DNA from: Macrostomum lignano
Taxonomy: Eukaryota
DNA: 64,000 bases
Assembly: GCA_002269645.1 (NCBI GenBank)
Contig: NIVC01001046.1
Span: forward strand, 1 to 64,000
Direction of reading: 5' to 3'
Positions 36,667 through 63,044 of the stretch are shown here, piece after piece. The notes below the pieces were generated by a model. The model saw only the letters and a program-made list of their open reading frames with translations, was not told the origin of the DNA and made no database searches. The position numbers and the translations under genes are program-made. The stretch's first letter is position 1. Every line of letters begins with the position of its first letter.

Positions 36667-37123
36667 CCACAGATACTAGAATAACTGGATGGGCCACTCA
36701 GGCACATATACTAGGTAAAACAGCTTTCTACTTTCAGTTCAGTAGCAAAGAAGAAAACATAAGCTATTTTATAAAAATAAAGCCAGCTCAAATGACCTTG
36801 AGTTTAGAAGTTTAGAAGCCCAAGCTTGCAGGCGTAAATAGCTTCCTAATTGGTTCAGCAGTGATGTACATTAGCCAGTCCACTGAAATGTACATGGCAG
36901 CTTTAGGCTGGAATTCCGAGAAAGGCAATAAAAATTGGGGTGCGCGGAGGAGGAGGGTAGCGTGGAAAGGCGCGGTTGGAGGGTTTAAGCTGGGGTAAGA
37001 GCCAATAAATGAGCCTTGGCTTTAAAAATACATTAAAATGCTTCTGTTTAACTACTACTGAACTGAAAGTAGCTTACACGCAAATGTGCTGAGTGGTCCA
37101 TCTAGTTATTCTAGTATCTGTGG
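36667..37123. mobile_element. MITE, 457 bp, 35-bp TIRs, apparent 6-bp TSD GATGCA
   Basis: CCACAGATACTAGAATAACTGGATGGGCCACTCAG (36667-36701) versus the reverse complement of 37089-37123 (33/35). GATGCA at 36661-36666 and 37124-37129. A related inverted copy lies at about 59135-59585. Confidence 0.88.
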
Positions 37124-39799: not shown

Positions 39800-39881
39800 C
39801 GCCAGAGCAGAGCCAAACTGGAAGGCGTATCAATACTGACTTTACATGCTGGCGTATGGACAGCGTGCGTGTTGTTTGCGG

Positions 39882-42713: not shown

Positions 42714-43179
42714 TTTGAGTCCCAAAATCTTCCAAGAAACATATAAAAAGTTATTAAACCTATTAAATGTTTATTTATGTCTTATTTTTTTACGCGAATC
42801 ATGGATCTCTAAGTGTATTAAACTTTGCAAAACATTTATCATAATTTCAATGTTATATTTGTTTTACCGACTCATTTCACTAAATGCGGAGGCTCCAGTT
42901 ACAAACTTCGGTCCTCTGTTAACTCGGTCTGCTCTTTGAATGCTCTTTTCGTGCTCATGTAAATCCGATTTGGTCATGTGGGCTATGGTTTTGGAGTGTT
43001 ACGTATGTATCATGAGCAGATTATGGAGTGTATCACCACGAATTGTAGCGAGTATCCTGAGCTGATTACAGGCCGGGTTTATCAGGGGAGGGTGTATCAG
43101 GAAGTGAACTGTGAGGATCTCTTTTTTGAAGTCTAAATATACGGCTTAATATATAACCGTTAAAATTGTTTCCCACTTT

Positions 43180-43570
43180 CTTCACAGCCCGAAGGTAGCT
43201 GCTGGCGAGGAACCGCTTTCCATTTGTGAAGCACATCCTGCAGCTAGAGAATAATCATGGTACCTGGGGCAGTACATGTACCTACGGCAGCAGGCTGAGG
43301 CCAACAGCAGAACGAGCTCGAGATCCAATTATAGCAGCAGCTTGAAACTCGATCAACACATCAGCTCTGCACTCTCAACTCAACACCTCAGCTCTGCACT
43401 CTTAACACCTCAGCTCTACGCTCTCAATACCTCAGCAGCTCTGCACTCTCCGTTGTAATGCATAATTAAAAGTCTCGTATGGAACGCTTAATTTTGTTTC
43501 AAGCACTTAACAATTTTGCTTTAAAATTTCATCAAGTGAAAATCAATGGAAAATAATATATTCAATAGGC
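43180..43570 (+). pseudogene. nanos: Decayed nanos copy: exon-2 acceptor, N-terminal part and 3' UTR, zinc finger deleted
   Basis: TTCACAG|CCCGAAGGTAGCTGCTGGCGAGGAACCGCTTTCCATTTGTGAAGCACATCCTGCAGCT matches 57918-57980 with a frameshift. It then joins CAGCTCTGCACTCTC/TTAACACCTCAG and CTTAATTTTGTTT...GCTTTAAAATT...AATATATTCAATA, matching the nanos 3' UTR 58436-58632. Confidence 0.85.
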
Positions 43571-43999
43571 GGGTTCTGCAATTACGAATGATCGGAGCGA
43601 AGAAGGCGGAAAGGAACGGAGTCTCAATCTCATCCACCTCTCCAGTCTCATCCCATCAGTCTCACTTTTTAATGTGACAGAAGGCCCGCCAGACTTACAG
43701 ACGCCGCACAGGGACGCAACCCGTTCGTGGAGTGAACTCAGATCCTCCCCGAGATTCCCCACCGCAGCTCTCGAGGCCTCAGCCAATGGCGGCAGCGCTG
43801 CGGCAAAACTCAAAGCGCTCAGTAGCGAGTTGCGGGGCCATAAATCACAGGTGGGCAGCCGCTTTGACAAACAGCAGCTCACATCCCGCACGAGCTGCGT
43901 GTGTGGACTCTCAGCTTTCTTTTCCTCATTTTTAGCAACTTGTCTACCAGTTCAGTCTCAGTTACAACAGGTTTCAGACATGCAGAGCAGCTTGTCACA

Positions 44000-44725
44000 C
44001 AGATTGGCAGAGGGGGTGGGGGATCAGCAGGGGGTCAGATTAGCAGAGGGTTGCGGATTGGCAGAGGGTGAGAAGGGGTGGATTGGCAGAGGAGGCGGAT
44101 TGGCAGAAGGAGCGGATTGGCAGAAGGGCAGATTGGCATTAGCAGGGGGGGGCGGATTGGCAGAGGGTTGCGGATTGGCAGAGGGTGAGAAGGGGCGGTT
44201 TGGCATAGGGGGCGGATTGGCAGAGGAGGCGGATTGGCAGAGGGGGCGGATTGGCAGAGGAGGTGGCGGATTGGCAGAGGGAGCGGATTGGCAGAGGGGG
44301 CGGATTGGCAGAAGGGCAGATTGGCATTAGCAGGGGGGGGGGCGGATTGGCAGAGGGTTGCGGATTGGCAGAGGGTGAGAAGGGGCGGTTTGGCATAGGG
44401 GGCGGATTGGCAGAGGAGGCGGATTGGCAGAGGGGGCGGATTGGCAGAGGGGTCAGATTGGCAGAGGGGGCGGATTGGCAGAGGAGGCGGATTGGCAGAG
44501 AGGCGGATTGGCAGAGGGGGCGGCGGATTGGCAGAGGGGCAGATTGGCATTAGCAGGGGGGGGGGCGTATTGGCAGAGGGGGCGAATTGGCAGAGGAGGA
44601 GGATTGGCAGAGGGGCGGATTGGCAGAGGGGCAGATTATCAAAATCGGTGGCAGCAAACGAAAGTTCTGCCAATCCGCCCCCTCTGCCAATCCGCCCCTT
44701 CATCCAATCCACCCCCTCTGCCAAT
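44000..44725. repeat. G-rich ~17-bp minisatellite (GGCGGATTGGCAGAGGG); the last units are inverted
   Basis: Tandem units; CTGCCAATCCGCCCC at 44668-44728 is the reverse complement. Confidence 0.9.
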
Positions 44726-45111
44726 CCGCCGCTCTCATATTGACCTTACCTCTGATGTGAGAAACTGAGAAATGCAGAGGAAAATAAATCATTTCACTGT
44801 CAGATCTTCGGGTGTCGCGAAGCAAGTTGAAGCAAGGCTTAGAATTGGACAGGACCACCCATGGCGAGGGACAATGGGAATGACAGCTTTTGGCTCCGCT
44901 TCTGCATTCTTCCACTCTGACTTCCCTCTCACTCACCTTCAAATGAAACAGTAAAGCTCAGACAAGGACTTCTAGAGCTAGCGCCATGCTATTTTGCACC
45001 TGAGCTATTTTTAGGAGTCCCCGGCTCAGATCATGGAGTCCCACCTGGTGTTAACAACGCCGGCGATCTTCACTTAAAAATGTAAAGAAACCGAAAAGCC
45101 TATTCTGGCTC

Positions 45112-45950
45112 TCCCTCTACCTCTCCCTCTCCCTCTCTCTTCCTCTCATTCTCCCTCTCCCTCTCCCTCTCCTTCTCCCTCTCCATCTCCCTCTTCCTCT
45201 CCCTCCCTTCTCTCTCTCCCTCTTCTCCCTCTCCCTCTCCCTCTCCTTCTCCCTCTCCATCTCCCTCTTCCTCTCCCTCCCTTCTCTCTCTCCCTCTTCT
45301 CCCTCTCCCTCTCTCTTCCTCTCCCTCTCCCTCTCTTCACCCTCTCCCTCTCTCTTCCTCTCCTTTTCCCCCTCCCTCTTCATCTCCCTCTTCCTCTCCC
45401 TCCCTTCTCTCTCTCCCTCTTCTCCCTCTCCCTCTCCCTCTCCTTCTCCCTCTCCATCTCCCTCTTCCTCTCCCTCCCTTCTCTCTCTCCCTCTTCTCCC
45501 TCTCCCTCTCTCTTCCTCTCCCTCTCCCTCTCTTCACCCTCTCCCTCTCTCTTCCTCTCCTTTTCCCCCTCCCTCTTCATCTCCCTCTTCCTCTCCCTCT
45601 CCCTCTCCCTCTCCCTCTCTCTCCCTCTTCCTCTCTCTTCCTCTCCCTCTCCCTCTCTTCACCCTCTCCCTCTCTCTTCCTCTCCTTCTCCCTCTCCCTC
45701 TCCCTCTCCTTCTCCCTCTCCATCTCCCTCTTCCTCTCCCTCCCTTCTCTCTCTCCCTCTTCTCCCTCTCCCTCTCTCTTCCTCTCCTTTTCCCCCTCCC
45801 TCTTCATCTCCCTCTTCCTCTCCTTCTCCCTCTCCCTCTCTCTCCCTCTTCCTCTCCTTCTCCCTCACCCCCTCTCTCTCCCTCTTCCTCTCCCTCTCCC
45901 TCTCTTCTTCCTCTCCCTCTCCCTCTCTTCACCCTCTCCCTCTCCCTCCC
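45112..45950. repeat. CT-rich low-complexity array
   Basis: Seen directly. Confidence 0.93.
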
Positions 45951-46811
45951 CATGCAACACAAAACCTCGAACTTTCACTTCTCTCCCTCAGCTGCCCTCA
46001 CCCAATTCAAATCTCACTGCTCCTCAGGCCGGCATGGCAACTCCCAGATCGCTCGAGTCGCTCCAGCAGCCGCAGACACCTGGGCTGGCCGAGAGGCGAC
46101 CGCGAATTCCCGCTTGGAAACCGCTTGGCAACGGAGAGCCGTCTCCAGCTGCAGCCAGCCTGCGGCCTCTCAACCCCGCTACCCTCAACCTTTAAGTCCA
46201 CCTGGAAGTCGAGCCTTCAAACCGGTTCGAAAACCCAGAGCTGCCCTTAGCAACCGCCGCAGACCCACCTGTGGAGTCTCAACTCGACTGATTCTAAAAC
46301 TGAGCCGGCAGTGCAGGCGTCCTTGAACCTCACGCAAGGAGCAAGGACCCGAATAACTCTTGGTCTGTCCTTGCGGACCCTCAGCCACTGAGGCCCATCC
46401 CTCTGTGTAATATCCCAAGCTTTATTTAGCGTTAATTTCAGTCTTAAAACAAGCGCTGCATCTTTTTAATGAATTCAACAAAATTTAGCAAAGATAATTG
46501 CATAGAAAATATTTACTAAGGCTTTGTACAAAGCAGCATATTGAGTTTATTTTATCCTACTTATATTAACTGAATGTAATTACAAGTGGGCAAAAATTAC
46601 TGGTTGTTATACTTTTAAAGTCATGCAGCTGAGCAAGAAAGTTGCGGTTATTTGCTTTGAAAATTACAAGCAGACAACTACAGAATCGTGTAACTCATGC
46701 AAAATCGAAGATGTAAGAAGCGATTCGGAAACAGTTTGGCCTTAAATGTGCAATCGAAATATTTTATGCGATGCGCCGATGGGAAATCAATTCAGAAGAG
46801 AGGCAAAAGCA

Positions 46812-47040
46812 AAGGGGTCAAGGGAGTCATTAGGGTCAAGGGGAGTCAGTGGAGTCAAAGGGAGTCAGTGGGGTCAAGGGGAGTCAGTGGGGTCAAAGGG
46901 AGTCAGTGGGGTCAAGGGGAGTCAGTGGGGTCAAGGAGAGTCAGTGGGGTCAAGGGGAGTCAGTGGGGTCAAGGGAGTCAGTGGGGTCAAGGGGATTCAG
47001 TGGGGTCAAGGGGAGTTAGTGGGGTCAAGGAGGGTTAGTG
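46812..47040. repeat. 18-19-bp repeat (GGGGTCAAGGGAGTCAGT)
   Basis: Tandem units. Confidence 0.9.
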
Positions 47041-47212
47041 GAATAAAGGTCAGCGATGCAATTGAGGATTACAAGTACTTGGTACATTTTTTGTAAACAA
47101 AAATGAGCGCATCCGACGTCCTTAGTTCGATTCGCGTGCTATGTAACAATAAGGCAACAGTAATAGTAACTTTTTCAACTCAAATCCCAATTTTTTAGAG
47201 GCCTTCTCTAGG

Positions 47213-47362
47213 GGTGTCCTGGGGTGCCGCTGTCTTGGGTGTCCTGGGGTGCCGCTGTCTTGGGGTGTCCTGGGGTGCCGCTATCTTGGGTGTCCTGGGG
47301 TGCCGCTGTCTTGGGTGTCCTGGGGTGCCGCTGTCTTGGGTGTCCTGGGGTGCCGCTGTCTC
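47213..47362. repeat. About 25-bp repeat (GTCCTGGGGTGCCGCTGTCTTGGGT) in the 3' UTR region of tandem-CCCH gene 1
   Basis: About 6 tandem units starting 20 bp past the stop codon. Confidence 0.88.
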
Positions 47363-47380
47363 TTCGGGTGTCTTCCATGT

Positions 47381-49266
47381 TCAGTGCAGAAAGGCGCATC
47401 GGCGGCCGAACCTGCAGTGCCCCGAGCTGAAGGCCAGGCAAGGCACGGTGCGGTACAGTGGGTGTCGAACCACCGACCTCAGCTCGGATTTTCCGTGGGC
47501 GAACCGGCACTTCGGACCGTAAGGACAGCTGCCGCTCTCCTGCGATGGCGATTTCGGTGGGCCATGAGTATGACCGGGCTGAGGCTATCTATGACCCATG
47601 CCTGGCCTATGATGCCCATGACCTATAATATCATGACCTATGCCTGGCCTATGATGCCCATGACCTAATATCTATGACCTATACCTGGCCTATGATGCCC
47701 ATGACCTATAATATCATGACCTATGCCTCGCCTATGATGCCCATGACCTAATATCTAAGATCTATACCTGGCCTATGATGCCCATGACCTAATATCTATG
47801 ACCTATACCTGGCCTATGATGTCCATGACCTAAAATCTATGACCTATACCTGGCCTATGATGTCCATGACCTATAATATCATGACCTATGCCTGGCCTAT
47901 GATGCCCATGACCTAATATCTATGACCTATACCTGGCCTATGATGCCCATGACCTATAATATCATGACCTATGCCTGGCCTATGATGCCCATGACCTAAT
48001 ATCTAAGATCTATACCTGGCCTATGATGCCCATGACCTAATATCTATGACCTATACCTGGCCTATGATGCCCATGACCTATATTTGGCATTTGATGCCCA
48101 TGACCTATAATATCGTGACCTATACTACCAATTACTTATAATACTTATGACCTATACTTTCTATGACTACTAGCCTCTCCGACGACCAATCCATATGACC
48201 ACTGTATTCCAACCCATTTATATGACCATCAATCCATATGAGCATCAATCTCGATGAGCAGCCACTTCTATGACCATAAATCTCAATAACCAGAAGCCAC
48301 TATGACGATCAATATCTATGTCCATCACACCATACGACCACGAATTTTTATGACAATCCTGTGACCATCAGCCTCCATGACCATCAATCCATGACTACGA
48401 ATCGTTATGACCCATTAGTCTGTGGCTCTCAGACCCTATGACCATTAAACCCTATGCTTTACCAATGCATTTCTATAAGCCAAGATGCAGTCTACTTCGC
48501 ACTCACAGAGTAGTTCAGGCAGAGCTCTGTTTTGTACTTCTCAGTGTCCAAGTCTCTTCTCCTTGAGCCCTCCTGTTCCTCCAGCAGCAGGTCGCTGACC
48601 AGCCGGTCGATGAGGCAGAAAGTGTCTTCGTCCGTGATGACACTGGCTTGCTCTGAAATATGAAATTTGGATGATGATTGTTTGGGATTATTGGCTGAGT
48701 TCTAATGTGTTGGGTATGTTGTAAACATGTGTTGTGACTCCAGACTTGATGTGTGCTGAATGTGTGCTGAATGTGTACTGAATGTGTACTGAATGTGTGC
48801 TGAATCTGTACTGAATGTGTGCTGAATGTGTACTGAATGTGTGCTGAATGTGTACTGAATGTGTGCTGAATGTGTACTGAATGTGTGCTGAATGTGTGCT
48901 GAATCTGTACTGAATGTGTGCTGAATGTGTACTGAATGTGTGCTGAATGTGTGCTGAATGTGTTCTGAATGTGTGCTGAATGTGTACTGAATGTGTACTG
49001 AATGTGTGCTGAATGTGTGCTGAATGTGTTCTGAATGTGTTCTGAATGTGTGCTGAATGTGTACTGAATGTGTTCTGAATGTGTGCTGAATGTGTACTAA
49101 ATGTGTGCTGAATGTGTACTGAATCTGTAATAAATGGGTGCTAAATGTGCAATAAATTCAATGAGCTGTCAATCAAAAATCCAGGTGCAGCAGAAATTTG
49201 CTTACCTTCGCTCAGTCGCAGCTCTCCATAGGCGGTCAATCCGGAACTGGAACTGCAGCTGCTCAT
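47381..49266 (-). CDS. TIS11/ZFP36-type tandem CCCH zinc-finger RNA-binding protein 1; exons 49266-49206, 48652-48507, 47539-47381; 121 aa
   Basis: [21 protein letters not shown]|GTAAG (phase 1); TTTCAG|[50 protein letters not shown]|GTGAGT (phase 0); CGCAG|[58 protein letters not shown] lead-in, C-x8-C-x5-C-x3-H, 18-aa linker, second finger C-x7-C-x5-C-x3-H. Not in the ORF track. Confidence 0.92.
47590..48125. repeat. About 41-42-bp minisatellite (CATGACCTATACCTGGCCTATGATGCCCATGACCTATAATAT) in intron 2 of CCCH gene 1
   Basis: Tandem units. Confidence 0.9.
48755..49125. repeat. 11-bp repeat (TGTGTGCTGAA/TGTGTACTGAA) in intron 1 of CCCH gene 1
   Basis: Tandem units. Confidence 0.93.
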
Positions 49267-49729
49267 GGCTGGCTATCAAAATTGCTGAGCTGTGGTGAAA
49301 AGTTGAGTAGTGAGTTCGGATGATTTTCAGTTTCAAGCCGCACAGATCCTCAGGCCGCTTTTATCGCCTTTGAAGGGAGGGGGCGCCTCCTGAGCCAATG
49401 GGGGAAGCAAGGAGAACCTCCGGGCCCCTTGAACCAATCCCTCACCTTAGCGAATGGGAATCGCCCAGTTTCGAGCAAGCTTTGGGGTGAATAAATCTTG
49501 TATAGAAACTGGTGGCTGAGTGAAAATCAATGCTTAACTTTCTGGAGATAAGAGAATCCCGGTCTGATGACCCCCTCCCATTATGAAAGGCAAATCGCAA
49601 TCGCAAAAAGGCAGCAGAAAGCAAAATTAAGGAAATTACACGATAACACCATGAATCAAATGAAAACGAAGCTATGAAACTATTTCCTCAAATGGATTTG
49701 GGGAATTCACTCTGACACACTTCATGTCA

Positions 49730-52700
49730 CTCTGACACTCCTCAATCCGTCCATCTGACACTCCTCAATCCGCCTCTCTGACACTCCTCAATCCGCCTCT
49801 CTGACAGTCCTCAATCCGCCCCTCTGACACTCCTCAATCCGCCCTCCGACACTTCCTAATCCGCCCCTCTGATACTCCTCAATCCGCACCTCTGGCAGTC
49901 CTCAATCCGCCCCTCTGACACTCCTCAATCTGCCCCTCTAAAACTCAATCCGCCCCTCTGACACTCCCCAATCCGCCCCTCTGACACTCCTCAGTCCGCC
50001 CCTCTGACACTCCTCAATCCGCCCCTCTGACACTCCTCAATCCGCCCTCCGACACTTCCTAATCCGCCCCTCTGATACTCCTCAATCCGCACCTCTGGCA
50101 GTCCTCAATCCGCCCCTCTGACACTCCTCAATCCGCCCCTCTGACACTCCTCAATCTGCCCCTCTAAAACTCAATCCGCCCCTATGACACTCCCCAATCC
50201 GCCCCTATGACACTCCTCAATCCGCCCCTATGACACTCCTCAATCCGCACCTCTGACATTCCTCAATCCGCCCCTCTGACACTCCCCAATCCGCCCCTAT
50301 GACACTCCTCAATCCGCCACTCCGACACTCCTCAATCCGCCCCTCTGACACTCCTCAATCCGCCCCTCTGACACTCCTCAATCCGCCACTCCGACACTCC
50401 TCAATCCGCCCCTCTGACACTCCTCAATCCGCCCCTCTGACACTCCTCAATCCGCCCCTCTGACACTCCTCAATCCGCCACTCCGACACTCCTCAATCCG
50501 CCCCTCTGACACTCCTCAATCCGCCCTCTGACACTCCTCAATCCGCCCCTCTGACACTCCTCAATCTGCCCCTCTAAAACTCAATCCGCCCCTATGACAC
50601 TCCCCAATCCGCCCCTATGACACTCCTCAATCCGCCCCTATGACACTCCTCAATCCGCACCTCTGACATTCCTCAATCCGCCCCTCTGACACTCCTCAAT
50701 CCGCCCTCCGACACTTCCTAATCCGCCCCTCTGATACTCCTCAATCCGCACCTCTGGCAGTCCTCAATCCGCCCCTCTGACACTCCTCAATCTGCCCCTC
50801 TAAAACTCAATCCGCCCCTCTGACACTCCCCAATCCGCCCCTCTGACACTCCTCAGTCCGCCCCTCTGACACTCCTCAATCCGCCCCTCTGACACTCCTC
50901 AATCCGCCCTCCGACACTTCCTAATCCGCCCCTCTGATACTCCTCAATCCGCACCTCTGGCAGTCCTCAATCCGCCCCTCTGACACTCCTCAATCCGCCC
51001 CTCTGACACTCCTCAATCTGCCCCTCTAAAACTCAATCCGCCCCTCTGACACTCCCCAATCCGCCCCTCTGACACTTCTCAGTCCGCCCCTCTGACACTC
51101 CTCAATCCGCCCCTCTGACACTCCTCAATCCGCACCTCTGACACTCCTCAATCCGCCCCTCTGACACTCCTCAATCCGCCCCTCTGACACTCCTCAATCC
51201 GCTCATCTGACACTCCTCAATCCGCACCTCTGACACTCCTCAATCCGCCCCTCTGACACTCCTCAATCCGCACCTCTGACATTCCTCAATCCGCCCCTCT
51301 GACACTCCTCAATCTGCCCCTCTAAAACTCAATCCGCCCCTATGACACTCCCCAATCCGCCCCTCTGACACTCCTCAATCCGCCCCTATGACACTCCTCA
51401 ATCCGCCCCTATGACACTCCTCAATCCGCACCTCTGACATTCCTCAATCCGCCCCTCTGACACTCCTCAATCTGCCCCTCTAAAACTCAATCCGCCCCTA
51501 TGACACTCCCCAATCCGCCCCTATGACACTCCTCAATCCGCCCCTATGACACTCCTCAATCCGCACCTCTGACATTCCTCAATCCGCCCCTCTGACACTC
51601 CTCAATCTGCCCCTCTAAAACTCAATCCGCCCCTATGACACTCCCCAATCCGCCCCTATGACACTCCCCAATCCGCCCCTATGACACTCCTCAATCCGCC
51701 CCTATGACACTCCTCAATCCGCACCTCTGACATTCCTCAATCCGCCCCTCTGACACTCCTCAATCTGCCCCTCTAAAACTCAATCCGCCCCTATGACACT
51801 CCCCAATCCGCCCCTATGACACTCCTCAATCCGCCACTCCGACACTCCTCAATCCGCCCCTCTGACACTCCTCAATCTGCCCCTCTAAAACTCAATCCGC
51901 CCCTCTGACACTCCTCAATCCGCCCCTCTGACACTCCTCAATCCGCCCCTCTGACACTCCTCAATCCGCCCCTCTGACACTCCTCAATCCGCCCCTCTGA
52001 CACTCCTCAGTCCGCCCCTCTAAAACTCAATCCGCCCCTCTGACACTCCTCAATCCGCCCCTCTGACACTCCTCAATCCGCCCCTATGACACTCCTCAAT
52101 CCGCACCTCTGACATTCCTCAATCCGCCCCTCTGACACTCCTCAATCTGCCCCTCTAAAACTCAATCCGCCCCTCTGACACTCCTCAATCCGCCCCTCTG
52201 ACACTCCTCAATCCGCCACTCCGACACTCCTCAATCCGCCCCTCTGACACTCCTCAATCCGCCCCTCTGACACTCCTCAATCTGCCCCTCTAAAACTCAA
52301 TCCGCCCCTATGACACTCCCCAATCCGCCCCTATGACACTCCTCAATCCGCCCCTCTGACACTCCTCAATCCGCACCTCTGACATTCCTCAATCCGCCCC
52401 TCTGACACTCCCCAATCCGCCCCTATGACACTCCTCAATCCGCCACTCCGACACTCCTCAATCCGCCCCTCTGACACTCCTCAATCCGCCCCTCTGACAC
52501 TCCTCAATCCGCCACTCCGACACTCCTCAATCCGCCCCTCTGACACTCCTCAATCCGCCCCTCTGACATTCCTCAATCCGCCCCTCTGACACTCCTCAAT
52601 CCGCCACTCCGACACTCCTCAATCCGCCCCTCTGACACTCCTCAATCCGCCCCTCTGACACTCCTCAATCCGCCCCTCTGACACTCCTCAATCTGCCCCT

Positions 52701-54182
52701 CTAAAACTCAATCCGCCCCTATGACACTCCCCAATCCGCCCCTATGACACTCCTCAATCCGCCCTATGACACTCCTCAATCCGCACCTCTGACATTCCTC
52801 AATCCGCCCCTCTGACACTCCTCAATCTGCCCCTCTAAAACTCAATCCGCCCCTATGACACTCCCCAATCCGCCCCTATGACACTCCTCAATCCGCCACT
52901 CCGACACTCCTCAATCCGCACCTCTGACACTCCTCAATCTGCCCCTCTAAAACTCAATCCGCCCCTATGACACTCCCCAATCCGCCCCTATGACACTCCT
53001 CAATCCGCCCCTATGACACTCCTCAATCCGCACCTCTGACATTCCTCAATCCGCCCCTCTGACACTCCTCAATCTGCCCCTCTAAAACTCAATCCGCCCC
53101 TATGACACTCCCCAATCCGCCCCTATGACACTCCTCAATCCGCCACTCCGACACTCCTCAATCCGCCCCTCTGACACTCCTCAATCTGCCCCTCTAAAAC
53201 TCAATCCGCCCCTCTGACACTCCTCAATCCGCCCCTCTGACACTCCTCAATCCGCCCCTCTGACACTCCTCAGTCCGCCCCTCTAAAACTCAATCCGCCC
53301 CTCTGACACTCCTCAATCCGCCCCTCTGACACTCCTCAATCCGCCCCTATGACACTCCTCAATCCGCACCTCTGACATTCCTCAATCCGCCCCTCTGACA
53401 CTCCTCAATCTGCCCCTCTAAAACTCAATCCGCCCCTCTGACACTCCTCAATCCGCCCCTCTGACACTCCTCAATCCGCCACTCCGACACTCCTCAATCC
53501 GCCCCTCTGACACTCCTCAATCCGCCCCTCTGACACTCCTCAATCTGCCCCTCTAAAACTCAATCCGCCCCTATGACACTCCCCAATCCGCCCCTATGAC
53601 ACTCCTCAATCCGCCCCTATGACACTCCTCAATCCGCACCTCTGACATTCCTCAATCCGCCCCTCTGACACTCCTCAATCTGCCCCTCTAAAACTCAATC
53701 CGCCCCTATGACACTCCCCAATCCGCCCCTATGACACTCCTCAATCCGCCACTCCGACACTCCTCAATCCGCACCTCTGACATTCCTCAATCCGCCCCTC
53801 TGACACTCCTCAATCCGCCACTCCGACACTCCTCAATCCGCCCCTCTGACACTCCTCAATCCGCCCCTCTGACACTCCTCAATCCGCCACTCCGACACTC
53901 CTCAATCCGCCCCTCTGACACTCCTCAATCCGCCCCTCTGACATTCCTCAATCCGCCCCTCTGACACTCCTCAATCCGCCACTCCGACACTCCTCAATCC
54001 GCCCCTCTGACACTCCTCAATCCGCCCCTCTGACACTCCTCAATCTGCCCCTCTAAAACTCAATCCGCCCCTATGACACTCCCCAATCCGCCCCTCTAAA
54101 ACTCAATCCGCCCCTCTGACACTCCTCAATCCGCCCCTCTGACACTCCCCAATCCGCCCCTATGACACTCCCCAATCCGCCC
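49730..54182. repeat. About 4.45-kb satellite of 23-bp monomers (CTGACACTCCTCAATCCGCCCCT) with higher-order structure
   Basis: Diagnostic variants (20-bp CTAAAACTCAATCCGCCCCT, ATGACACTCCCC, CCGCACCT, GACATT, TCTGCC) recur in a fixed order; for example TAAAACTC at 51481 and 51616 are 135 bp apart (20+5x23). Confidence 0.95.
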
Positions 54183-54705
54183 CAGTTTCCGAATTCGAGT
54201 CCGGGAAACAAAAGGGCGGCTCGGGAAATCCCACCAGACTTTGAGATGCCGTGCAGGGAAGCAGCAGGCAAAGCGTGGGCGGCCAGCATTTCGTGCGGGG
54301 GACTCGCACTGATCCTCCACAACCGCAACCTCAGCCAGGACTCAACCCCCGCAGATCCCCGTAGACTCCGGCTGCCTGTCTGCGGTCGGCCTCAGCTCCG
54401 ACCTGCGAGCTCTCAAAGCCAATGGCGGAGCGCTGCGGCAAAACTCAAAGTGCTCAGTAGCGAGATGCGGGGCCATAAATCACAGGTGGGCAGCACAAAC
54501 AGCAGCTCACACCTCACACCAGCTGCCTGCGTAGAATCAAAGCCCGGGCTTGCAAGCTGTCTGTAGGGTGGTGCATGTACTTTTAAACTCACCGCTTACA
54601 GTTGATCAAACACTAAACTACTAAAGTTTAGTTGAGTTGGTTTTGCTGGGCTTTGGTCTTTGTTGGAATTGGAAAACTAACAGCTGTGTGAATTAGCTTT
54701 TTGGG

Positions 54706-55105
54706 TTCAGGTCATTCAGATTGAAGTTCAGGTCATTCAGATTGAGGCTCAGGTCATTCAGATTGAGGTTCAGGTCATTCAGATTGAGGTTCAGGTCATT
54801 CAGATTGAGGTTCAGGTTATTCAACTTGAGGTTCAGGTCATTCAACTTGAGGTTCAGGTCATTCAGATTGAGGTTCAGGTCATTCAGATTGAGGTTCAGG
54901 TTATTCAACTTGAGGTTCAGGTTATTCAACTTGAGGTTCAGGTCATTCAACTTGAGGTTCAGGTCATTCAGAGTGAAGTTCATGTCATTCAGATTGAGGT
55001 TTAGGTCATTGAGATTGAGGTTCAGGTCATTCAACTTGAGGTTTAGGTCATTGAGATTGAGGTTCAGGTCATTCAGATGGGGGTTTAGGTCATTCAGATT
55101 GAGGC
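54706..55105. repeat. 21-bp minisatellite (TTCAGGTCATTCAGATTGAGG)
   Basis: Tandem units. Confidence 0.93.
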
Positions 55106-55494
55106 TTATAGGTATAGCTCGTAACCGTATTTTACAGAAGAAAATCAATTGGATTTAAACTGCGCAGGACCACCCATTGGGAGAGACAATGGGAATGACA
55201 GCTTTTGGCTCCGCTTCTGAATTCTTCCACTCTGACTTCTCTCTCTCTCAGTCTCTCTCTCAGTCTCTCTCTCGCAACAACCACCCCACCATGCGCACTG
55301 AAGAGGGGGACGCCAAGCGTACAACACAAACCAGAGGGTGCAAGGCACACGACTAACCCTAACACCCTCTAATAGAATTGGGGAGGTCAGATCATGGAGT
55401 CCCGGTCTTAACCAAGCCAGCACGCTTCACTTTAAAATGTAAAAAAAATGAAAATCCCTTCTGACTCTCCTCTCCCTGGCCCTCTCGCTTTCCC

Positions 55495-56770
55495 TCTCCT
55501 CTCCGCCCCTCTCCGCCCCTCTCCGCCTCTCTCCGCCTCTCTCCGCCCCTCTCCGCTCCTCTCCGCTCCTTTCCGCCCCTCTCCGCTCCTCTCCGCCCCT
55601 CTCCGCCCCTCTCCGCTCCTCTCCGCCCCTCTCCGCTCCTTTCCACCTCTCTCCGCCTCTCTCCGCCCCTCTCCGCTCTTCTCCGCTCCTCTCCGCCCCT
55701 CTCCGCTCCTCTCCGCCCTTCTCCGCTCCTCTCCGCCTCTGTCCGCCCCTCTCCGCCCCTCTCCACTCCTCTCCGCCCCTCTCCGCTCCTCTCCGCTCCT
55801 CTCCGCCCCTCTCCGCTCCTCTCCGCCCCTCTCCGCTCCTCTCCCTCTCCGCCCCTCTCCGCTCCTCTCCGCCCTTCTCCGCTCCTCTCCGCTCCTCTCC
55901 GCCCCTCTCCGCCCTTCTCCGCTCCTCTCCGCCTCTGTCCGCCCCTCTCCGCCCCTCTCCACTCCTCTCCGCCCCTCTCCGCTCCTCTCCGCCCCTCTCC
56001 GCCCTTCTCCGCTCCTCTCCGCCTCTGTCCGCCCCTCTCCGCTCTTCTCCGCTCCTCTCCGCCTCTGTCCGCCCCTCTCCGCCCCTCTCCACTCCTCTCC
56101 GCCCCTCTCCGCTCCTCTCCGCCCCTCTCCGCCCTTCTCCGCTCCTCTCCGCCTCTGTCCGCCCCTCTCCGTCCCTCTCCGCCTCTCTCCGCCTCTCTCC
56201 GCCCCTCTCCACCTATCTCCGCCCCTCTCCGCCTATCCCCGCCCCTCTTCGCCTCTCCCCGCCTCTCTCCGCCTCTCTCCGCCCCTCTCCGCTCGGACCC
56301 CTCTCCGCTCCTCTCCGCCCCTCTCCGCTCCTCTCCGCTCCTTTCCGCCCTTCTCCGCTCCTCTCCGCCTCTGTCCGCCCCTCTCCGCTCTTCTCCGCTC
56401 CTCTCCGCCTCTGTCCGCCCCTCTCCGCCCCTCTCCACACCTCTCCGCCCCTCTCCGCTCCTCTCCGCTCCTCTCCGCCCCTCTCCGCTCCTCTCCGCCC
56501 CTCTCCGCTCCTCTCCGCTCCTCTCCGCTCCTCTCCGCTCCTCTCCGCCCCTCTCCGCTCCTCTCCGCCCCTCTCCGCTCCTCTCCGTCCCTCTCCGCCC
56601 TTCTCCGCTCCTTTCCGCCCCTCTCCGCTCCTCTCCGCCCCTCTCCGCCCCTCTCCGCTCCTTTCCACCTCTCTCCACCTCTCTCCGCCCCTCTCCGCCT
56701 CTCTCCGCCCCTCTCCGCATCTCTCCGCCTCTCCGCCCCTCTCCCTCCCCTTTCCGCCCCTCTCCGTCCC
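55495..56770. repeat. 10-bp repeat (CCGCCCCTCT/CCGCTCCTCT), about 1.3 kb
   Basis: Tandem units. Confidence 0.95.
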
Positions 56771-57512
56771 TCACCGCGCTTTCAACAACTCCAATCTCCT
56801 CTCCTCTCTCTCAATCTTCCTTTCGCTCCTCAGGCCGGCATGGCAACTCCCAGATCGCTCGAGTCGCTCCAGCAGCCGCAGCCACCTGGGCTGGCCGAGA
56901 GGCGACCGCAAATTCCCGCTTGGAAACCGCTTGGCAACGGAGAGCCGTCTCCAGCTGCAGCCAGCCTGCGGCCTCTCAGCTCCGTCACCCCCCTTCCCAA
57001 TCCGAGTCTCGTTTGGTTGCTGGGGCCATGGGAGTTGGGAGACGGCCTGGAGACGCGTCGGTCTGAGATGGCCAGTCGAGTCCACCTGTGTAAAGCTGAG
57101 TTCTCGGCATCTCAACATTTCAAGATGGAATTGTATAAATGTATGCTAAAAATCAGGATTCTTTTTAAGTTTCAAGCTGCATAAATACTGAACTCCTGCT
57201 CAAGAAACTCAATTGTCAGTTGTGAAGAAAATATTCAGCTTTAAAATGAGAGAAAGACTGTGAAAACTGTGAAAACTTTGAACTGGCCTCGACTGTCACT
57301 GCCATGCAGTATTCTGTCTCCACCCTCTGTCTCCACCCCCAGTGAAAGCGCGTCAGCCAATAGCAGGCCGCCTCACACCCACAGGTGAAGATGATTGTCC
57401 GCATGGAGTATATTAGAGTGAATAATTTCTCAGATCTCAGGCAGACTAATTCCAATTCTAGGCTAACTGAAATCCGCAACCTACAGCTTCACCCAGCTTC
57501 TCTGCCTCATCA

Positions 57513-58435
57513 ATGCAGCCGTCAAGGAATCGCAGCTTCATTGGCCTGAGGTGAGTTCTGAAAGCAGGTTTGAGTACAGGTGTCAGATTTATGCATATAA
57601 ACTGACAATTAATCGCATCACTTCCTATTTTTTGCGTGTGTTGTGTAGTTTTACCACTTTTAAATATAAGCCAGGCCCCTTCTCTCTCTCACTTCTCTCC
57701 TATTCTATCTCTCCTATCTCGCTCTTCCAATTTTACGACCGATTAAAACTGCCACTGTCCGCCTGTTGCTAAATTTAGCTGTGTTAGCTCATTCTTTGTT
57801 ATTTGTCCCACTAGTAATTGGACAACAGGGCATGCTTTTGAGACCTACTTAGCTCAGCAGTGTATAACCTCCCTGCCGTCCTGATCAAGCCTAAATATAA
57901 AACTTCCCTGCACTCTCTTCACAGCCCGCAGGTAGCTGGAGAGGAACCGCTTCCCATTGTGAAGCACATTCTGCAGCTACAGAATCGGTACCTGCAGTAC
58001 CTGCGGCAGCAGACTGACACCCAGCAGCAGCTCAAGCTCGAGACCCAGCAGCAGCTCCAGCTCGAGACCCAGCAGCAGCACCAGCTCAAGATCCAGCAGC
58101 AGCTCCAGCTCGAGACCCAGCAGCAGCTCCAGCTCCAGTTCCAGCCCGCTGCCGCCCCGCTGCCCAATGCCGCCCTGCAGCGCGCGGTGCTCGCCAGGAA
58201 CGCCAGCCGGCCGCGCCGCCCCGTCTTCTGCGTCTTCTGCCGCAAGAACGGCGAGCCGGAGGCCTTCAGCAGCGGCCACACCCTGAAGGACGGCAACGGC
58301 AGCGTCGCCTGCCCGGTGCTCAGCCGCTTCACCTGCCCGCTGTGCGGCGCCACCGGCGGCAGCGCCCACACCGTGAAATACTGCCCGCTGGGCACCGGCC
58401 ACGGCTGCGGCCGCTGGAAACTGACAGGACAGTGA
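57513..58435 (+). CDS. nanos: Nanos; exons 57513-57550 and 57925-58435; 182 aa
   Basis: Canonical C-x2-C-x12-H-x10-C-x7-C-x2-C-x7-H-x4-C double CCHC finger (CVFCRKNGEPEAFSSGHTLKDGNGSVACPVLSRFTCPLCGATGGSAHTVKYCP). Exon 1 MQPSRNRSFIGL+AG|GTGAGT joins in phase 2 to TTCACAG|C CCG CAG. CCAAT at about 57357 and AATAAA at about 58600. Confidence 0.95.
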
Positions 58436-59134
58436 CAGCCCTGCACTCTCAGCACCTCTTAACACCTCACTCTTAACCTGCACTCTTAACACCTCAGCTC
58501 TGCATGCACTCTCAACTGTAATGCAAACCAACTATAAGTAAAAATTTGCAATACTTAATTTTGTTTTCTGCAACCAACCTTTGCTTTAAAATTAAAATTA
58601 ATAAATAATAAAGGAAAAGAATATATTCAATAAGTAAGTCAATAAGAGCAATTATTGTATGTCTGCAATCGGTCAATTTGCCACATAATTGTATAGTTCG
58701 CCTCTTGTTTTGTCTGAAAGTAATTTTAGGACTTTGTTTAATGAGTATACCGGTGTTCATCGTCCTGAGTTCGAGTTCTTGATGGCAGACAGACTCAGTC
58801 GTTAGACTCTAACGTATTGCGCTATTCGAGATATTCGGCTTTCAATTCAATCAAAGAATCTAAAAATAAAGGTACATATGCGCTTCAGAAAGCAGGAACT
58901 TCTATTAATAACCAGTTGGGATATACAATCGAATTCTTTCAGTTGAACTGAAAACTGCAGTAGAGAGAAACACAAGAGCATCGGGAATCTGTGCGGTGAT
59001 GGGGAATCTCGGGGAGGATCTGTCTGAGTCCTCGCCACCAACCGCTGATAGAAATCTCTGGCAACCACGAAATATTGAGCCGTAAACGTTTGCTGGGAAT
59101 AGAAATATTGAAGCCCATTATAACTTGCTCTATA

Positions 59135-59585
59135 CCAGATACTAGTAACTAGACTAACTACGAGTAGATAGGCCACTCAGCACACTTGCGTGTAAGCTAC
59201 TTTTAGTTCAGTAGTAAGTTAAACTGAAGCATTTTAATGTATTTTTAAAGACAGGCTTTTACCCCCTAAACTTAAACCCTCAAACTCCCCCTACCTCTAC
59301 CCCCGCCCGCCGCCAAAATTTTATTACCTTCCTCGGTGGTTCCAGCCTAAATCTGCCTTGTACATTTCAGTGGACTGGCTAATGTACATTATGGCTGAAC
59401 CAATTAGCAAGCTGTTTTCTTTTGCAAGCTTGGGCTTCTAAATTTATCAAAGTCATTTCATCTGCCTTTATTCTATAAAATAGCTTGTGTATTATTCTTT
59501 ATTGGTATACTGACTTAAAGTTGAAAGCTGTTTTACTAAGTATACATTATGCTTGAGTGCCCCAATCTAGTCATTTGCTCTATAC
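59135..59585. mobile_element. Degenerate inverted copy of the 36667-37123 MITE
   Basis: CCACTCAGCAC..TGCGTGTAAGCTACTTT..GTTCAGTAGTA, TGTACATTTCAGTGGACTGGCTAATGTACAT and GCAAGCTTGGGCTTCTAAA match the reverse complement of the first copy. Confidence 0.85.
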
Positions 59586-59861
59586 TAATCTCATTTCCCT
59601 TTCCCACAGAACCTGCACGCTTTTAAGTGCCGAGAATGAAAAAAAAACTATAATTAGGATTTTGGTTTCATGTAACAAGTTTACCATAAGCACTATTCAC
59701 TCTGACACAACAGTACACTGACACAACAGCACACTGACACAACAACACACTGACACATACATAACTCGCAACAGAAATATCCACCAGTTCTGTCCTGTGC
59801 ATTAACATGGCTCACTATTCTAGAGAAAAGAAATTTTTAGAAACTGCGGTTGCTAAGCTAA

Positions 59862-60000
59862 GCCTTTTCGAACCGATTTGAGGCTGGGGTGGCGGAGCTG
59901 AGAGGCCTCTGGCTAGCTGCAGCTGGGGAAAGCTCTCCGTTGCCAGGCGGTTTCCAAGCGGCAACTTTGGTTGGCCTCTCGGCCCAGGTGGCTGCGTGAA
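59862..60000 (-). promoter_or_regulatory. Third, inverted copy of segment C, followed by CCAAT boxes (60026-60030, 60066-60070) and TATAAAA (60127-60133) of CCCH gene 2
   Basis: CTGAGAGGCC..GCTGCAGCTGG..GCTCTCCGTTGCCAGGCGGTTTCCAAGCGG..GCCTCTCGGCC matches the reverse complement of 46070-46170 and 56880-56980. Regulatory role is inferred. Confidence 0.55.
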
Positions 60001-60351
60001 TGCTGTGTTAGGCTTCTCAATTTCTATTGGTTAAAATTTGCTGACGCGCAGTCTCAGCTGTTCCCATTGGCTGAGAAAGCTTGCAATGACCGCCGAGCCC
60101 CCCCCCCCCGAGGCCTTCGATGGGACTATAAAATGTTTATATTATTCTAATCTAACCGAATTCAAGCAGCACAAAACTGAAACTCCGTAATTATTTAGTT
60201 TACAATCGTAATTTCGATTAAATAAAATAATCTGCGTAGGAACCATCACCGGCTGAAGCGCCCAATACTTACTTAGCTCGTATCAAGAAGAATCTAACCG
60301 AATTCAAGCCAACCTCGATTTTAACAGTTAACTGGAGCATTGTCAGCCAAT

Positions 60352-62657
60352 ATGGCAAGTTATATATCCTGACTGTCTTTAGGCTTCCTGACCCTGACAT
60401 ACCTCTATAGATCCTGGCACACCTCTATAGATCCTGACACACCTCTATAGATCCTGGCACACCTCTATAGATCCTGACACACCTCTATAGATCCTGGCAC
60501 CTCTCTTCTCTAAGATTCTGACACACCTCTATAGATCCTGGCACCTCTCTTCTCTATAGATTCTGACACATCTCTATAGATCCTGGCACCTCTCTATAGA
60601 TTCTGACACACCTCTATAGATCCTGGCACCTCTCTATAGATCGTGACACACCTCTATAGATCGTGACACACCTCTTTAGATCGTGACACACCTCTATAGA
60701 TCGTGACACAACTCTATAGATCGTGACACACCTCTATAGATCGTGACACACCTCTATAGATCGTGACACACCTCTATAGATCGTGACACACCTCTTTAGA
60801 TCGTGACACACCTCTATAGATCGTGACACACCTCTATAGATCGTGACACACCTCTATAGATCGTGACACACCTCTATAGATCGTGACACACATTTACAGA
60901 TGCTGACGCAAAGAAATGGACGCCATTAGATACCCTGCTTGCTATTTTCAAGCCATAAAAATCAATAAAGCAGTCTAGAATCATACCACCAATGCATTTA
61001 TTTTGTAAACCACTCTCAACTCCAAATTTCAGTCCACCTCTCCAAGCACTCCATCAACCGAAGCAGGCAGCCCCTGTATAGGCTCAGCTTCCAGTGCCGC
61101 AGTTTCAGCCGGACTGAAATTTAAAACAGAGTTGTGCCGGAACTTCGAAGTGAGTCCTACACAGCTCTGCTGCTCTTGCTGCTTTATTTTCGTAAAACCG
61201 CCATCTGACACCCCACCCACAACCTGCCCCTATCCTCTCTGACACCCCCAAAATCTGCCCCTATCCTCTCTGACACCCCCAATCTGCCCCTATCCTCTCT
61301 GACACCCCAATCTGCCCCTATCCTCTCTGCCACTCCCACAATCTGCCCCTATCCTCTCTGACACCCCCAAAATCTGCCCCTATCCTCTCTGACACCCCCA
61401 ATCTGCCCCTATCCTCTCTGACACCCCCAATCTGCCCCTATCCTCTCTGCCACTCCCACAATCTGCCCCTATCCTCTCTGACACTCCCACAATCTGCCCC
61501 TATCCTCTCTGACACCCCCAATCTGCCCCTATCCTCTCTAACACCCCACAATCTGCCCCTATCCTCTCTAACACCCCACAATCTGCCCCTATCCTCTCTG
61601 CCACTCCCACAATCTGCCCCTATCCTCTCTGCCACTCCCACAATCTGCCCCTATCCTCTCTGACACCCCCAATCTGCCCCTATCCTCTCTAACACCCCAC
61701 AATCTGCCCCTATCCTCTCTAACGACCCACAATCTGCCCCTATCCTCTCTGACACCCCACAACCTGCCCCTAATCCTCTCTGACACCCCACAATCTGGCC
61801 CTAATCCTCTCTGCCACTCCCACAATCTGGCACCTAATCCTCTCTGGCACCCCCACAATCTGGCACCTAATCCTCTCTGGCACCCCCACAATCTGCCCCT
61901 AATCCTCTCTGGCACCCCCACAATCTGCCCCTAATCCTCTCTGCCACTCCCACAATCTGGCACCTAATCCTCTCTGGCACCCTCACAATCTGGCACCTAA
62001 TCCTCTCTGGCACCCCCACAATCTGGCACCTAATCCTCTCTGGCACCCCCACAATCTGCCCCTAATCCTCTCTGGCACCCCCACAATCTGCCCCTAATCC
62101 TCTCTGATGGGGTCCCTTGACAAGTCCCCATCCGCCCCTGACAAGTCCCAATCCGCCCCTGACAAGTCCCCATCCGCCCCTGACAAGTCCCAATCCGCCC
62201 CTGACAAGTCCCCATCCGCCCCTGACAAGTCCCCATCCGCCCCTGACAAGTCACCATCCGCCCCTGACAAGTCCCCATCCGCCCCTGACAAGTCACCATC
62301 CGCCCCTGACAAGTCCCCATCCGCCCCTGACAAGTCACCATCCGCCCCTGACAAGTCACCATCCGCCCCTGACAAGTCACCATCCGCCCCTGGCAAGTCA
62401 CCATCCGCCCCTGGCAAGTCACCATCCGCCCCTGACAAGTCACCATCCGCCCCTGACAAGTCACCAGCCGCATCCACCCCGCACTCCCGCAGCTCAGCGG
62501 CAGCTGCCCTTTTGCCAACCGGTGCCAATTCGCCCACGGCCCCGAGGAGCTGCGAGGCCGGCCCGACCGGCACTGGCTGTACAAAACGGAGCCCTGCCGC
62601 GCTTTCCATGGCGAAGGACTCTGCCGGTACGGCGGCCGCTGTCATTTTCTACACTGA
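60352..62657 (+). CDS. TIS11/ZFP36-type tandem CCCH zinc-finger RNA-binding protein 2; exons 61033-61149 and 62493-62657, with the start codon probably at 60352-60354; about 94 aa
   Basis: TTTCAG|STSPSTPSTEAGSPCIGSASSAAVSAGLKFKTELCRNFE|GTGAGT (phase 0); CCGCAG|LSGSCPFANRCQFAHGPEELRGRPDRHWLYKTEPCRAFHGEGLCRYGGRCHFLH*. Two C-x8-C-x5-C-x3-H fingers, and the intron splits finger 1 at a closely equivalent position to gene 1. First exon inferred from ATG|GCAAGT (GC donor). Not in the ORF track. Confidence 0.88.
60395..60895. repeat. 20-bp minisatellite (CACCTCTATAGATCGTGACA)
   Basis: Tandem units in the putative intron 1 of CCCH gene 2. Confidence 0.93.
61205..62105. repeat. About 30-bp C-rich minisatellite (CAATCTGCCCCTATCCTCTCTGACACCCCC)
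   Basis: Tandem units in the intron of CCCH gene 2. Confidence 0.93.
62120..62465. repeat. 21-bp minisatellite (CCTGACAAGTCACCATCCGCC)
   Basis: Tandem units ending just before the 62493 exon. Confidence 0.93.
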
Positions 62658-63044
62658 TTGACTTATGTGCATAGTTGTATGTATGTTTGTATTTATGTGT
62701 ATATACGTCCATATGCTTAAAAATACAGACTTTACAGACTTATTTAAAAAATAATCCAACATATACTCAATTCCCGTTAAATTCTATTTAACTGACTTAT
62801 TTTCTTGAAAATCAAATTTTCATACTGCGGTGAAGCTGATAAACTAAGAAGAGAATGCAACAAGGGAGGAAATAGGAGAGGAAATGGCGGGAGGCAACTT
62901 AGCGTCGGTTCGATATTCGGTGCCGCTCAGCTTAAGCTATTCGCCTCACTTATTGTACTCATGTTTCTCTGTACTCGTGCTTTGAAATCTGTGACAATGA
63001 ATTCATAGATGGGTGGACCTTTTTTCTAAACCTTTCTGCAAAGT

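Follow-up and report, generated by a model that had tools for sequence, protein, structure and literature searches.

The locus and its genes

The window analysed here, 64,000 nucleotides in length, comprises positions 1 to 64,000 of contig NIVC01001046.1 of Macrostomum lignano (assembly GCA_002269645.1). It carries a nanos gene lying between two very small genes for proteins with tandem CCCH zinc fingers (TZF), which we call TZF-A and TZF-B. M. lignano is a regenerating flatworm with neoblasts; repeats make up more than half of its genome, and simple and tandem repeats 15% (PMC5730564, PMC7053086). The minisatellite load is extreme across the whole window, with 71 Tandem Repeats Finder rows of score at least 200. 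A sequence-only reading of this DNA had proposed a tandem-CCCH gene at 47381-49266 (-), divergent from nanos at 57513-58435 (+), a second tandem-CCCH gene at 60352-62657 (+) that starts less than 2 kb past nanos, a finger-less, decayed nanos copy at 43180-43570, and repeated non-coding segments around them. All of these elements were recovered, and the genes could be modelled and recognized as members of known families. The nanos gene has the following parts:

57513-57550, + strand: coding part of exon 1, MQPSRNRSFIGL plus 2 nt (ATG...CTGAG), followed by the donor GTGAGT
57925-58435, + strand: exon 2 (acceptor cacag, CCCG...TGA), with a Q-rich repeat and two CCHC fingers
58229-58390, + strand: the CCHC fingers, within exon 2
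58591-58612, + strand: cluster of poly(A) signals ATTAAA/AATAAA in the 3′ untranslated region (UTR), 160-175 nt past the stop

An upstream exon is needed because the frame of exon 2 has no in-frame ATG. The acceptor at 57924 restores the frame after the 38-nt exon 1, and the spliced product has 182 aa. It matches Pfam zf-nanos with E=2e-23, covering profile positions 1-53 of 54, and the zebrafish Nanos structure 3ALR with 1.3e-18. The zinc ligands are canonical (C-x2-C-x12-H-x10-C ... C-x2-C-x7-H-x4-C), and the domain reads CVFC-RKNGEPEAFSSG-H-TLKDGNGSVA-C-PVLSRFT-CPLC-GATGGSA-H-TVKY-C. When the finger region was searched against the full library, three proteins of 91-95% identity were found, two of which are UniProt entries of M. 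lignano. The GC-rich coding DNA, the minisatellites and the fact that zebrafish Nanos is the top match among PDB structures had pointed to a vertebrate or lamprey-like source, an idea discarded in view of these M. lignano entries. A word-index protein search with the whole nanos open reading frame (ORF) gave no match, the Q-rich words having probably swamped it; with the finger region alone, sponge nanos was the only match.

The gene thus has the same complete double-knuckle domain as the Nanos family of Drosophila, zebrafish (3ALR), Smed-nanos and Sma-nanos-1/-2, and shows about 55% identity in the finger domain to the Nanos proteins of zebrafish and Drosophila. It differs from known Nanos in being a short two-exon gene, in its Q-rich octapeptide repeat of variable length and in the lack of a visible NOT1 motif. 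The octapeptide (QQQLQLET)n is coded by a 24-bp minisatellite at 58019-58135, whose units keep the frame and vary in number: about 5 in the nanos of the window, about 14 in the nanos of a sister locus described below (L001) and about 19 in a decaying copy there (7409-7741 and 16347-16799 of L001). The N-terminus, MQPSRNRSFIGLSPQVAGEEPLPIVKHILQLQNRYLQYL, contains no NOT1-interacting motif of the kind found in vertebrate Nanos1-3 (F-x-x-W-x-D-Y-L type). This motif is not universal among invertebrate Nanos proteins, so that its absence is no bar to membership of the family.

TZF-A lies on the opposite strand and has three coding exons:

49266-49206, - strand: coding part of exon 1, donor GTAAGC
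between 49206 and 48652, - strand: intron 1, carrying an 11-bp satellite (48749-49149)
48652-48507, - strand: exon 2, with the N-terminal region, the lead-in KYKTEL and the first Cys of finger 1
47540-48506, - strand: intron 2, of phase 0 and inside finger 1, mostly 41-bp minisatellite (47586-48082)
47539-47381, - strand: exon 3, with the second half of finger 1, the linker, finger 2 and a stop right after the last His (..CAFLH-stop)

Joined through the donors GTAAGC and GTGAGT and CAG acceptors, these exons code for 121 aa, with an acidic, leucine-rich stretch in the N-terminal part. TZF-B has similar parts:

60352-60354, + strand: coding start ATG, then a GC donor (GCAAGT)
60345-60367, + strand: TCAGCCAAT-ATG-GCAAGT-TATATAT, that is, CCAAT box, ATG and TATA-like run
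60395-60891, + strand: 20-bp minisatellite inside intron 1, or in the outron if the gene is trans-spliced
61033-61149, + strand: exon 2 (STSPS...KFKTELCRNFE), with the phase-0 acceptor TTTCAG and the donor GTGAGT
61150-62492, + strand: intron in finger 1, matching the finger-1 intron of TZF-A in position and phase and made up almost entirely of minisatellites with units of 31 and 21 bp
62493-62657, + strand: exon 3, with the remainder of finger 1, a 19-residue linker, finger 2 and a stop right after the last His (..CHFLH-stop)
62690-62696, + strand: UAUUUAU, the core of an AU-rich element (ARE), in the 3′UTR
62698-62705, + strand: UGUAUAUA, consensus of the Pumilio response element, the two 3′UTR elements lying 33-48 nt past the stop

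The TZF-B product has 94 aa, and its finger domain matches the tandem-finger structure of TIS11d (1RGO) with E=6e-20. Pfam zf-CCCH was detected as two stretches in each of the two proteins, with E=1e-15 and 9e-17. In TZF-A, finger 1 has the spacing x8-x5-x3 and finger 2 x7-x5-x3 (C-x7-C), the linker is 18 residues long, and the lead-ins are KYKTEL for the first finger and LYRTVP, which is degenerate, for the second. Both fingers of TZF-B are x8-x5-x3, separated by the 19-residue linker GPEELRGRPDRHWLYKTEP, with the lead-ins KFKTEL and LYKTEP, the second again degenerate. The sequence-only reading had attributed the absence of both genes from its ORF list to short exons amid satellites. Indeed, neither is visible as an ORF of at least 60 aa in the finger frame, because minisatellites with units of 11 to 41 bp fill all the TZF introns.

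For TZF-B, the closest relative is a GenBank protein of the same species. The protein BOX15_Mlig028414g1 (P0152, 94 aa), annotated at the sister locus, is equal to M plus the 93-aa TZF-B model with one substitution, and the annotation it belongs to is described as transcriptome-guided (PMC5730564). Since the annotated sister protein equals our model, the junction inside finger 1 is independently supported. The identifier Mlig028414 was not found mentioned in the searchable literature. Two further proteins from read-archive and metagenome contigs (P0165 and P0182) contain 12 residues, CRNFELSGSCPF, identical to finger 1 of TZF-B, but they extend past finger 2; they are perhaps relatives, from a second flatworm or some other animal.

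Kinship and family membership of the TZF genes

The two TZF proteins are 58% identical over 65 finger-domain residues, with dN=0.36, dS about 1.4 and dN/dS about 0.26. They have in common a phase-0 intron four residues past the first Cys of finger 1 and the stop right after the last His. On these sequence comparisons, in which the numbers are small, TZF-A and TZF-B are old paralogues under purifying selection.

Comparison with the TIS11/ZFP36 family, represented by TIS11d (1RGO), revealed the same two CCCH fingers, the Y/FKTEL-type lead-in of the first finger and the aromatic stacking positions; the two mini-TZF proteins are 55-58% identical to it over the domain. All four fingers retain the RNA-stacking aromatics, namely Y/F following the second Cys and F preceding the His. 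The traits of this family are two C-x8-C-x5-C-x3-H fingers, affinity for UAUUUAU elements, a fixed 18-residue linker, (R/K)YKTEL before each finger and, in metazoan members, a C-terminal CNOT1-binding motif by which RNA binding leads to deadenylation. The M. lignano proteins depart from it in several ways: an intron splits finger 1, finger 2 of TZF-A has C-x7-C and the lead-in LYRTVP, and the TZF-B linker has 19 residues, not 18. Compared with tristetraprolin they are only 94 and 121 aa long, end at the last zinc ligand and have neither CNOT1-binding nor tetraproline motifs. The absence of the CNOT1-binding tail is general, as the frame ends ..FLH-stop in both TZF genes and in all sister copies. 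The nematode proteins POS-1, MEX-5/6 and OMA-1/2 are likewise small tandem-CCCH regulators of 3′UTRs in germline or early embryo that have no tristetraprolin-type tail. However, the match to MEX-5 is weak (E=4e-5, one finger), and the mini-TZF fingers are of the canonical TIS11 type.

Geometry, the nanos remnant and local repeats

TZF-A and nanos are arranged head to head across a gap of 8.2 kb, of which minisatellite occupies more than 6 kb. TZF-B starts 1917 bp past the nanos stop. The other elements of the cluster are:

43174-43567, + strand: nanos remnant (pseudogene fragment), with the exon-2 acceptor, the first ~60 codons and the 3′UTR kept, and exon 1 and the finger-coding part gone
43772-46184, + strand: duplicated non-coding segments that also precede the intact nanos, X′ (43772-43915) similar to 54406-54543, and Y′ with a satellite (44836-46184) similar to 55151-56990
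49730-56777, no strand: intergenic minisatellites between TZF-A and nanos, of a 23-bp unit (49730-54183), a 21-bp unit (54704-55104) and a 10-bp unit (55498-56777)

The remnant aligns with the intact gene in two parts, 43174-43367 with 57911-58087 (74% identity) and 43334-43567 with 58407-58632 (67%). The counterpart of about 58090-58405, which includes the fingers, is missing, and what remains is broken by frame-shifting indels and stops. By tblastn, no pieces of nanos or TZF genes were found in the window beyond the three genes and this remnant. With a remnant in the window and a decaying nanos copy in the sister locus, the cluster region also looks like a hotspot of duplication and decay.

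Copies of element X are present around the cluster at 43723-43915, 54406-54543 and 58993-59042, and those of element Y at 45950-46190, 56780-56990 and 59881-59996. Translations of both elements occur inside the M. lignano UniProt models P0002, P0005 and P0007; X and Y are probably genome-wide repeats that were drawn into gene predictions.

The sister locus and sequence constraint

The same linkage was found at a second locus, L001 (NIVC01001363.1:36589-58947, 22359 bp), which is colinear with 46073-62747 of the window at 93-98% identity. The gene order there is TZF-A (-), nanos (+), TZF-B (+), nanos′ (-) and TZF-A′ (+), where the last two form an inverted second arm corresponding to DNA past the end of the window. 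The window closes with 230 bases of an 18-bp satellite. They match the one that precedes nanos′ in L001, so the second arm is probably also present at the locus of the window itself. Four read-through UniProt models (P0002, P0005, P0006 and P0007) mix pieces of nanos, TZF-A and TZF-B, so the linkage recurs in them also; these models come from an older assembly and combine the pieces in sense and antisense, in accord with an inverted-arm arrangement. We considered P0006 as an older, more divergent copy and rejected this, since it derives from the ML2 assembly of lower base accuracy (PMC5730564) and faulty assembly may account for the additional differences and altered frames that it shows. The physical linkage that the sequence-only reading had noticed is real.

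The left nanos of L001 is intact and codes for 254 aa, its extra length arising from about 14 repeat units versus about 5 in the window. The right copy, nanos′, is decaying: it has no exon 1 and contains an in-frame stop and a frame shift, with the finger region still open. Both TZF-A copies of L001 are intact, and the splice sites are identical in all three TZF-A copies. TZF-A of the window differs from the left copy by 2 synonymous changes only, and from the right copy by 2 synonymous and 3 replacement changes, all replacements being outside the fingers. An inverted 217-bp copy (98.6%) of the TZF-A upstream region (window 49528-49312) was also observed between TZF-B and nanos′, at 14443-14659 of L001. 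It has the CCAAT box and no ATG, and belongs to the rearranged fragments that are absent from the window.

How does divergence between the two loci fall on genes and on the surrounding DNA? In the coding parts of the three genes, 9 of 1080 positions are mismatched and there is no indel column; in the unique non-coding DNA of the same alignments, 79 of 4272 positions are mismatched and the indel columns number 172 (Fisher p=0.016 for mismatches, 5e-17 for indel columns). The low divergence and intact frames lead us to conclude that the TZF genes are functional and not debris, although the numbers are small.

Promoters

Upstream of nanos and TZF-A lie candidate promoter elements that resemble the run around the TZF-B start given above:

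49359-49399, - strand: putative TZF-A promoter, AGCCAAT at 49393-49399 (running opposite to the gene) and TATA-like ATAAAA at 49364-49359, about 95-130 nt before the ATG
57355-57415, + strand: putative nanos promoter, CCAAT box TCAGCCAATAG at 57355-57361 and TATATTA at 57409-57415, 100-156 nt before the ATG

An AGCCAAT (NF-Y-type) box is therefore present within 160 nt upstream of the ATG in all three genes. The window holds 15 such sites, so that all three genes would have one by chance with a probability of about 5e-5. The upstream regions of nanos and TZF-B also have the 10-mer TCAGCCAATA in common. A separate CCAAT-box promoter for each gene would be a simpler reading of these sequences than one operon.

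Interpretation of the locus

Taken together, these data make it fairly probable that the locus consists of three separate, intact genes for sequence-specific mRNA-binding proteins together with local duplication debris, that the arrangement has been copied, and that the genes work by the mechanism that follows. Each gene would be transcribed from its own CCAAT-box promoter and not as an operon. Nanos, whose domain is complete, would be expected by family default to act as a partner of Pumilio on 3′UTRs. The mini-TZF proteins are likely to bind AREs of UAUUUAU type through the conserved finger aromatics. Since they have no C-terminal CNOT1-binding tail, they would be expected to act by occupying sites and not by recruiting the deadenylase directly: they might rival full-length ZFP36-type proteins or block translation, by analogy with the CCCH proteins of the nematode germline. 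Alternatively, an effector role might reside in their short N-terminal regions.

This bears on what had been proposed from the sequence only, namely a linked, possibly co-regulated module of germline or stem-cell regulators acting through CCR4-NOT deadenylation. The genes are real, belong to the named families, are linked and come from a flatworm with neoblasts, so that this part of the proposal stands. The sequences do not back the deadenylation mechanism: it is doubtful for the TZF proteins, which stop at the last His, and no vertebrate-type NOT1 motif is visible in their neighbour nanos.

The single coincidence that needs explanation is the position of nanos between two TZF genes, because the adjacency of the TZF paralogues themselves is a matter of local duplication. 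Most likely, a local duplication of TZF genes acquired a nanos gene as neighbour, and the arrangement would then have spread by segmental and whole-genome duplication. Genome duplication in M. lignano is recent: non-repetitive blocks of at least 95% identity amount to 180 Mb (PMC5730564, PMC7053086). As the linkage recurs within one recently duplicated genome, with unique DNA about 98% identical, its recurrence says little about selection for linkage.

Several points weigh against this interpretation. The 5′ end of TZF-B is ambiguous: the annotated start requires a coding exon of 3 nt and a GC-AG intron, and its ATG is flanked by a CCAAT box on one side and a TATA-like run on the other. The test of constraint depends on few substitutions. 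At L001 the GenBank annotation calls TZF-B alone, leaving the intact nanos and both TZF-A copies uncalled, and nanos and TZF-A are known here from DNA sequence alone. The M. lignano annotation dropped transcripts that overlap repeats (PMC5730564), and tandem repeats are present in a nanos exon and in the TZF-A 3′UTR; this filter may explain the missing calls, as could low expression. The C-x7-C of TZF-A and the longer linker of TZF-B suggest that RNA specificity may differ from that of tristetraprolin. Finally, the mode of action proposed for the mini-TZF proteins is deduced from a missing tail.

The best surviving alternative goes further and has the three genes coupled as a co-regulated germline or neoblast module. 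They would be linked by joint activation, for example through NF-Y-type factors, and by overlapping mRNA targets, and the TZF-B mRNA would itself be a target of Pumilio/Nanos and of TZF proteins. Such a module appears rather improbable to us, although several observations point to it. Joint activation would fit with the AGCCAAT box that each gene has shortly before its ATG and with the 10-mer of nanos and TZF-B, but CCAAT boxes occur in promoters generally. Both nanos loci of Schistosoma mansoni have accessible sites marked by NFY motifs, and the male germline is lost when nfy is knocked down (PMC11398382). The 3′UTR of TZF-B carries UGUAUAUA and UAUUUAU less than 50 nt past the stop. This pair is conserved in the sister locus (12396-12411 of L001), and there are only 7 Pumilio-type sites on both strands of the whole window. 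The unit was copied as a block; yet the copies are about 2% diverged, too recent to be informative, as retained linkage would be expected even without selection, and one nanos copy per locus is decaying. A list of M. lignano genes up-regulated with age includes homologues named NANOS1, ZFP36 and ZFP36L1 (PMC5946080); these are not tied to this locus. Searches of the supplements to the M. lignano papers on neoblasts and germline, on the genome and on ageing gave lists of Gene Ontology terms only, with no gene-level entry for the present genes. The CCAAT boxes, the schistosome dependence on NFY and the 3′UTR sites of TZF-B are leads toward coupling, not evidence for it; functional coupling of nanos and TZF genes is possible and unproven.

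Could nanos and TZF-B be transcribed together? According to this second alternative, the two form an operon with one precursor RNA, and a spliced leader, trans-spliced at 61033, supplies the AUG of TZF-B. TZF-A is on the opposite strand and hence outside any such operon. Trans-splicing affects 38.8% of M. lignano genes, and polycistronic units make up about 7% of its transcriptional units (PMC5730564); operons were delimited by same-strand orientation, a repeat-adjusted spacing below 1 kb and trans-splicing of the downstream gene (PMC8629364). Among them, 18% open with a gene that is not trans-spliced, and intergenic distances are inflated by repeats. Exon 2 of TZF-B contains no methionine and is preceded by an in-frame stop. 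Its acceptor TTTCAG at 61032|61033 fits the trans-splice motif [T/C]TNCAG (PMC8629364), the leader of M. lignano ends ...TTGCATG (PMC5173321), and phase 0 would place the leader AUG in frame. Like the genes of known M. lignano operons, nanos and TZF-B lie on the same strand, with an acceptor compatible with the motif. A flatworm leader AUG is reportedly able to start translation, as Cheng et al. 2006 (J Biol Chem) are said to have described, and we counted this in favour of the operon.

Against this, nanos has poly(A) signals of its own 2.4 kb upstream of the TZF-B acceptor. Without tandem and dispersed repeats this distance is about 1.1-1.3 kb, which exceeds the 1-kb threshold. A CCAAT box and a TATA-like run are found directly upstream of TZF-B. 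The GenBank coding sequence of the sister locus begins at the genomic ATG equivalent to 60352, which implies a cis-spliced coding exon of 3 nt and a GC-AG intron, joining ...CCAATATG to the TCCACC of exon 2; the start coordinate proposed by the sequence-only reading agrees with it. We had at one point discarded ATG 60352 as out of phase. That judgement considered a GT donor alone and is ruled out by ATG|GCAAGT. As this start was produced by a transcript-based pipeline, we favour it over the spliced-leader AUG, holding it roughly twice as likely. An ATG followed by GC or GT is expected by chance within 700 bp, so that neither start model is proven. The protein, of 94 residues, is identical under both. 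On balance the operon is unlikely, and we prefer three genes with separate promoters.

A bolder version would see the locus as a selected cassette. NF-Y-type factors would drive the genes together in neoblasts or in stem cells of the germline, the tail-less TZF proteins would control or counteract ARE-mediated decay in the cells where Nanos/Pumilio represses, the TZF-B mRNA would be held in feedback through its UGUAUAUA and UAUUUAU sites, and palindromic amplification would serve dosage. We regard this as speculative and would give it little credence. The last alternative, that these are redundant, silent or decaying paralogues while working nanos and ZFP36-type genes lie elsewhere in a recently polyploid genome, is suggested by the nanos remnant of the window, the truncated and frame-shifted nanos′, the GenBank calls missing for nanos and TZF-A at L001 and the satellites throughout, but it is very improbable in view of the intact frames, splice sites and zinc ligands in the window and matching copies, the lower divergence of coding DNA with no coding indel, the dN/dS of about 0.26 across an old duplication and the transcript-based annotation of TZF-B.

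Significance

The genes are uncharacterised new members of two known families, and their arrangement is undescribed and partly palindromic. Neither a nanos-TZF cluster, of which the sequence-only reading likewise knew no description, nor these genes are described in the searchable literature. M. lignano offers transgenesis, RNAi, in situ hybridisation and expression atlases of stem cells and germline. If nanos and the tail-less TZF genes are co-expressed, they would constitute a compact case for combining two classes of 3′UTR regulators in germline or stem cells, and the locus could show how a tandem-CCCH domain functions without a deadenylase-recruiting tail. Expression studies based on the GenBank gene set may overlook nanos and TZF-A, and the exons of all three genes are easily lost among satellites.

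Other features of the window

Scans of the window for Rfam families and tRNAs found no RNA genes. Exact look-up of a GTG-start ORF and of the ORF at 953-1453 matched no record. The neighbouring genes include:

953-1453, + strand: ORF of the GGACT/AIG2-like gamma-glutamyl cyclotransferase type
33586-33924, + strand: ankyrin-repeat exon
38313-39829, - strand: two-exon SNAPC1-like gene

None of these three is tied to germline RNA regulation. A piggyBac-type transposase (DDE_Tnp_1_7 and zinc finger) at 5026-6998 (+) is broken over two frames, 5575-6189 and 6153-6995, and upstream of it lies an acidic ORF (5103-5441) coded by a 45-48-bp tandem repeat. Dispersed repeats form two inverted pairs, 11329-11689 with 14263-14614 (88% identity) and 36680-37104 with 59165-59575 (80%); the last copy sits between nanos and TZF-B. 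Finally, an EF-hand gene of the neuronal-calcium-sensor type occupies 18501-24839 (-). Its identity to hippocalcin-like and neurocalcin proteins is about 60%, and it has a first exon (MGN...) near 24740 and introns packed with kilobases of purine-rich satellites.

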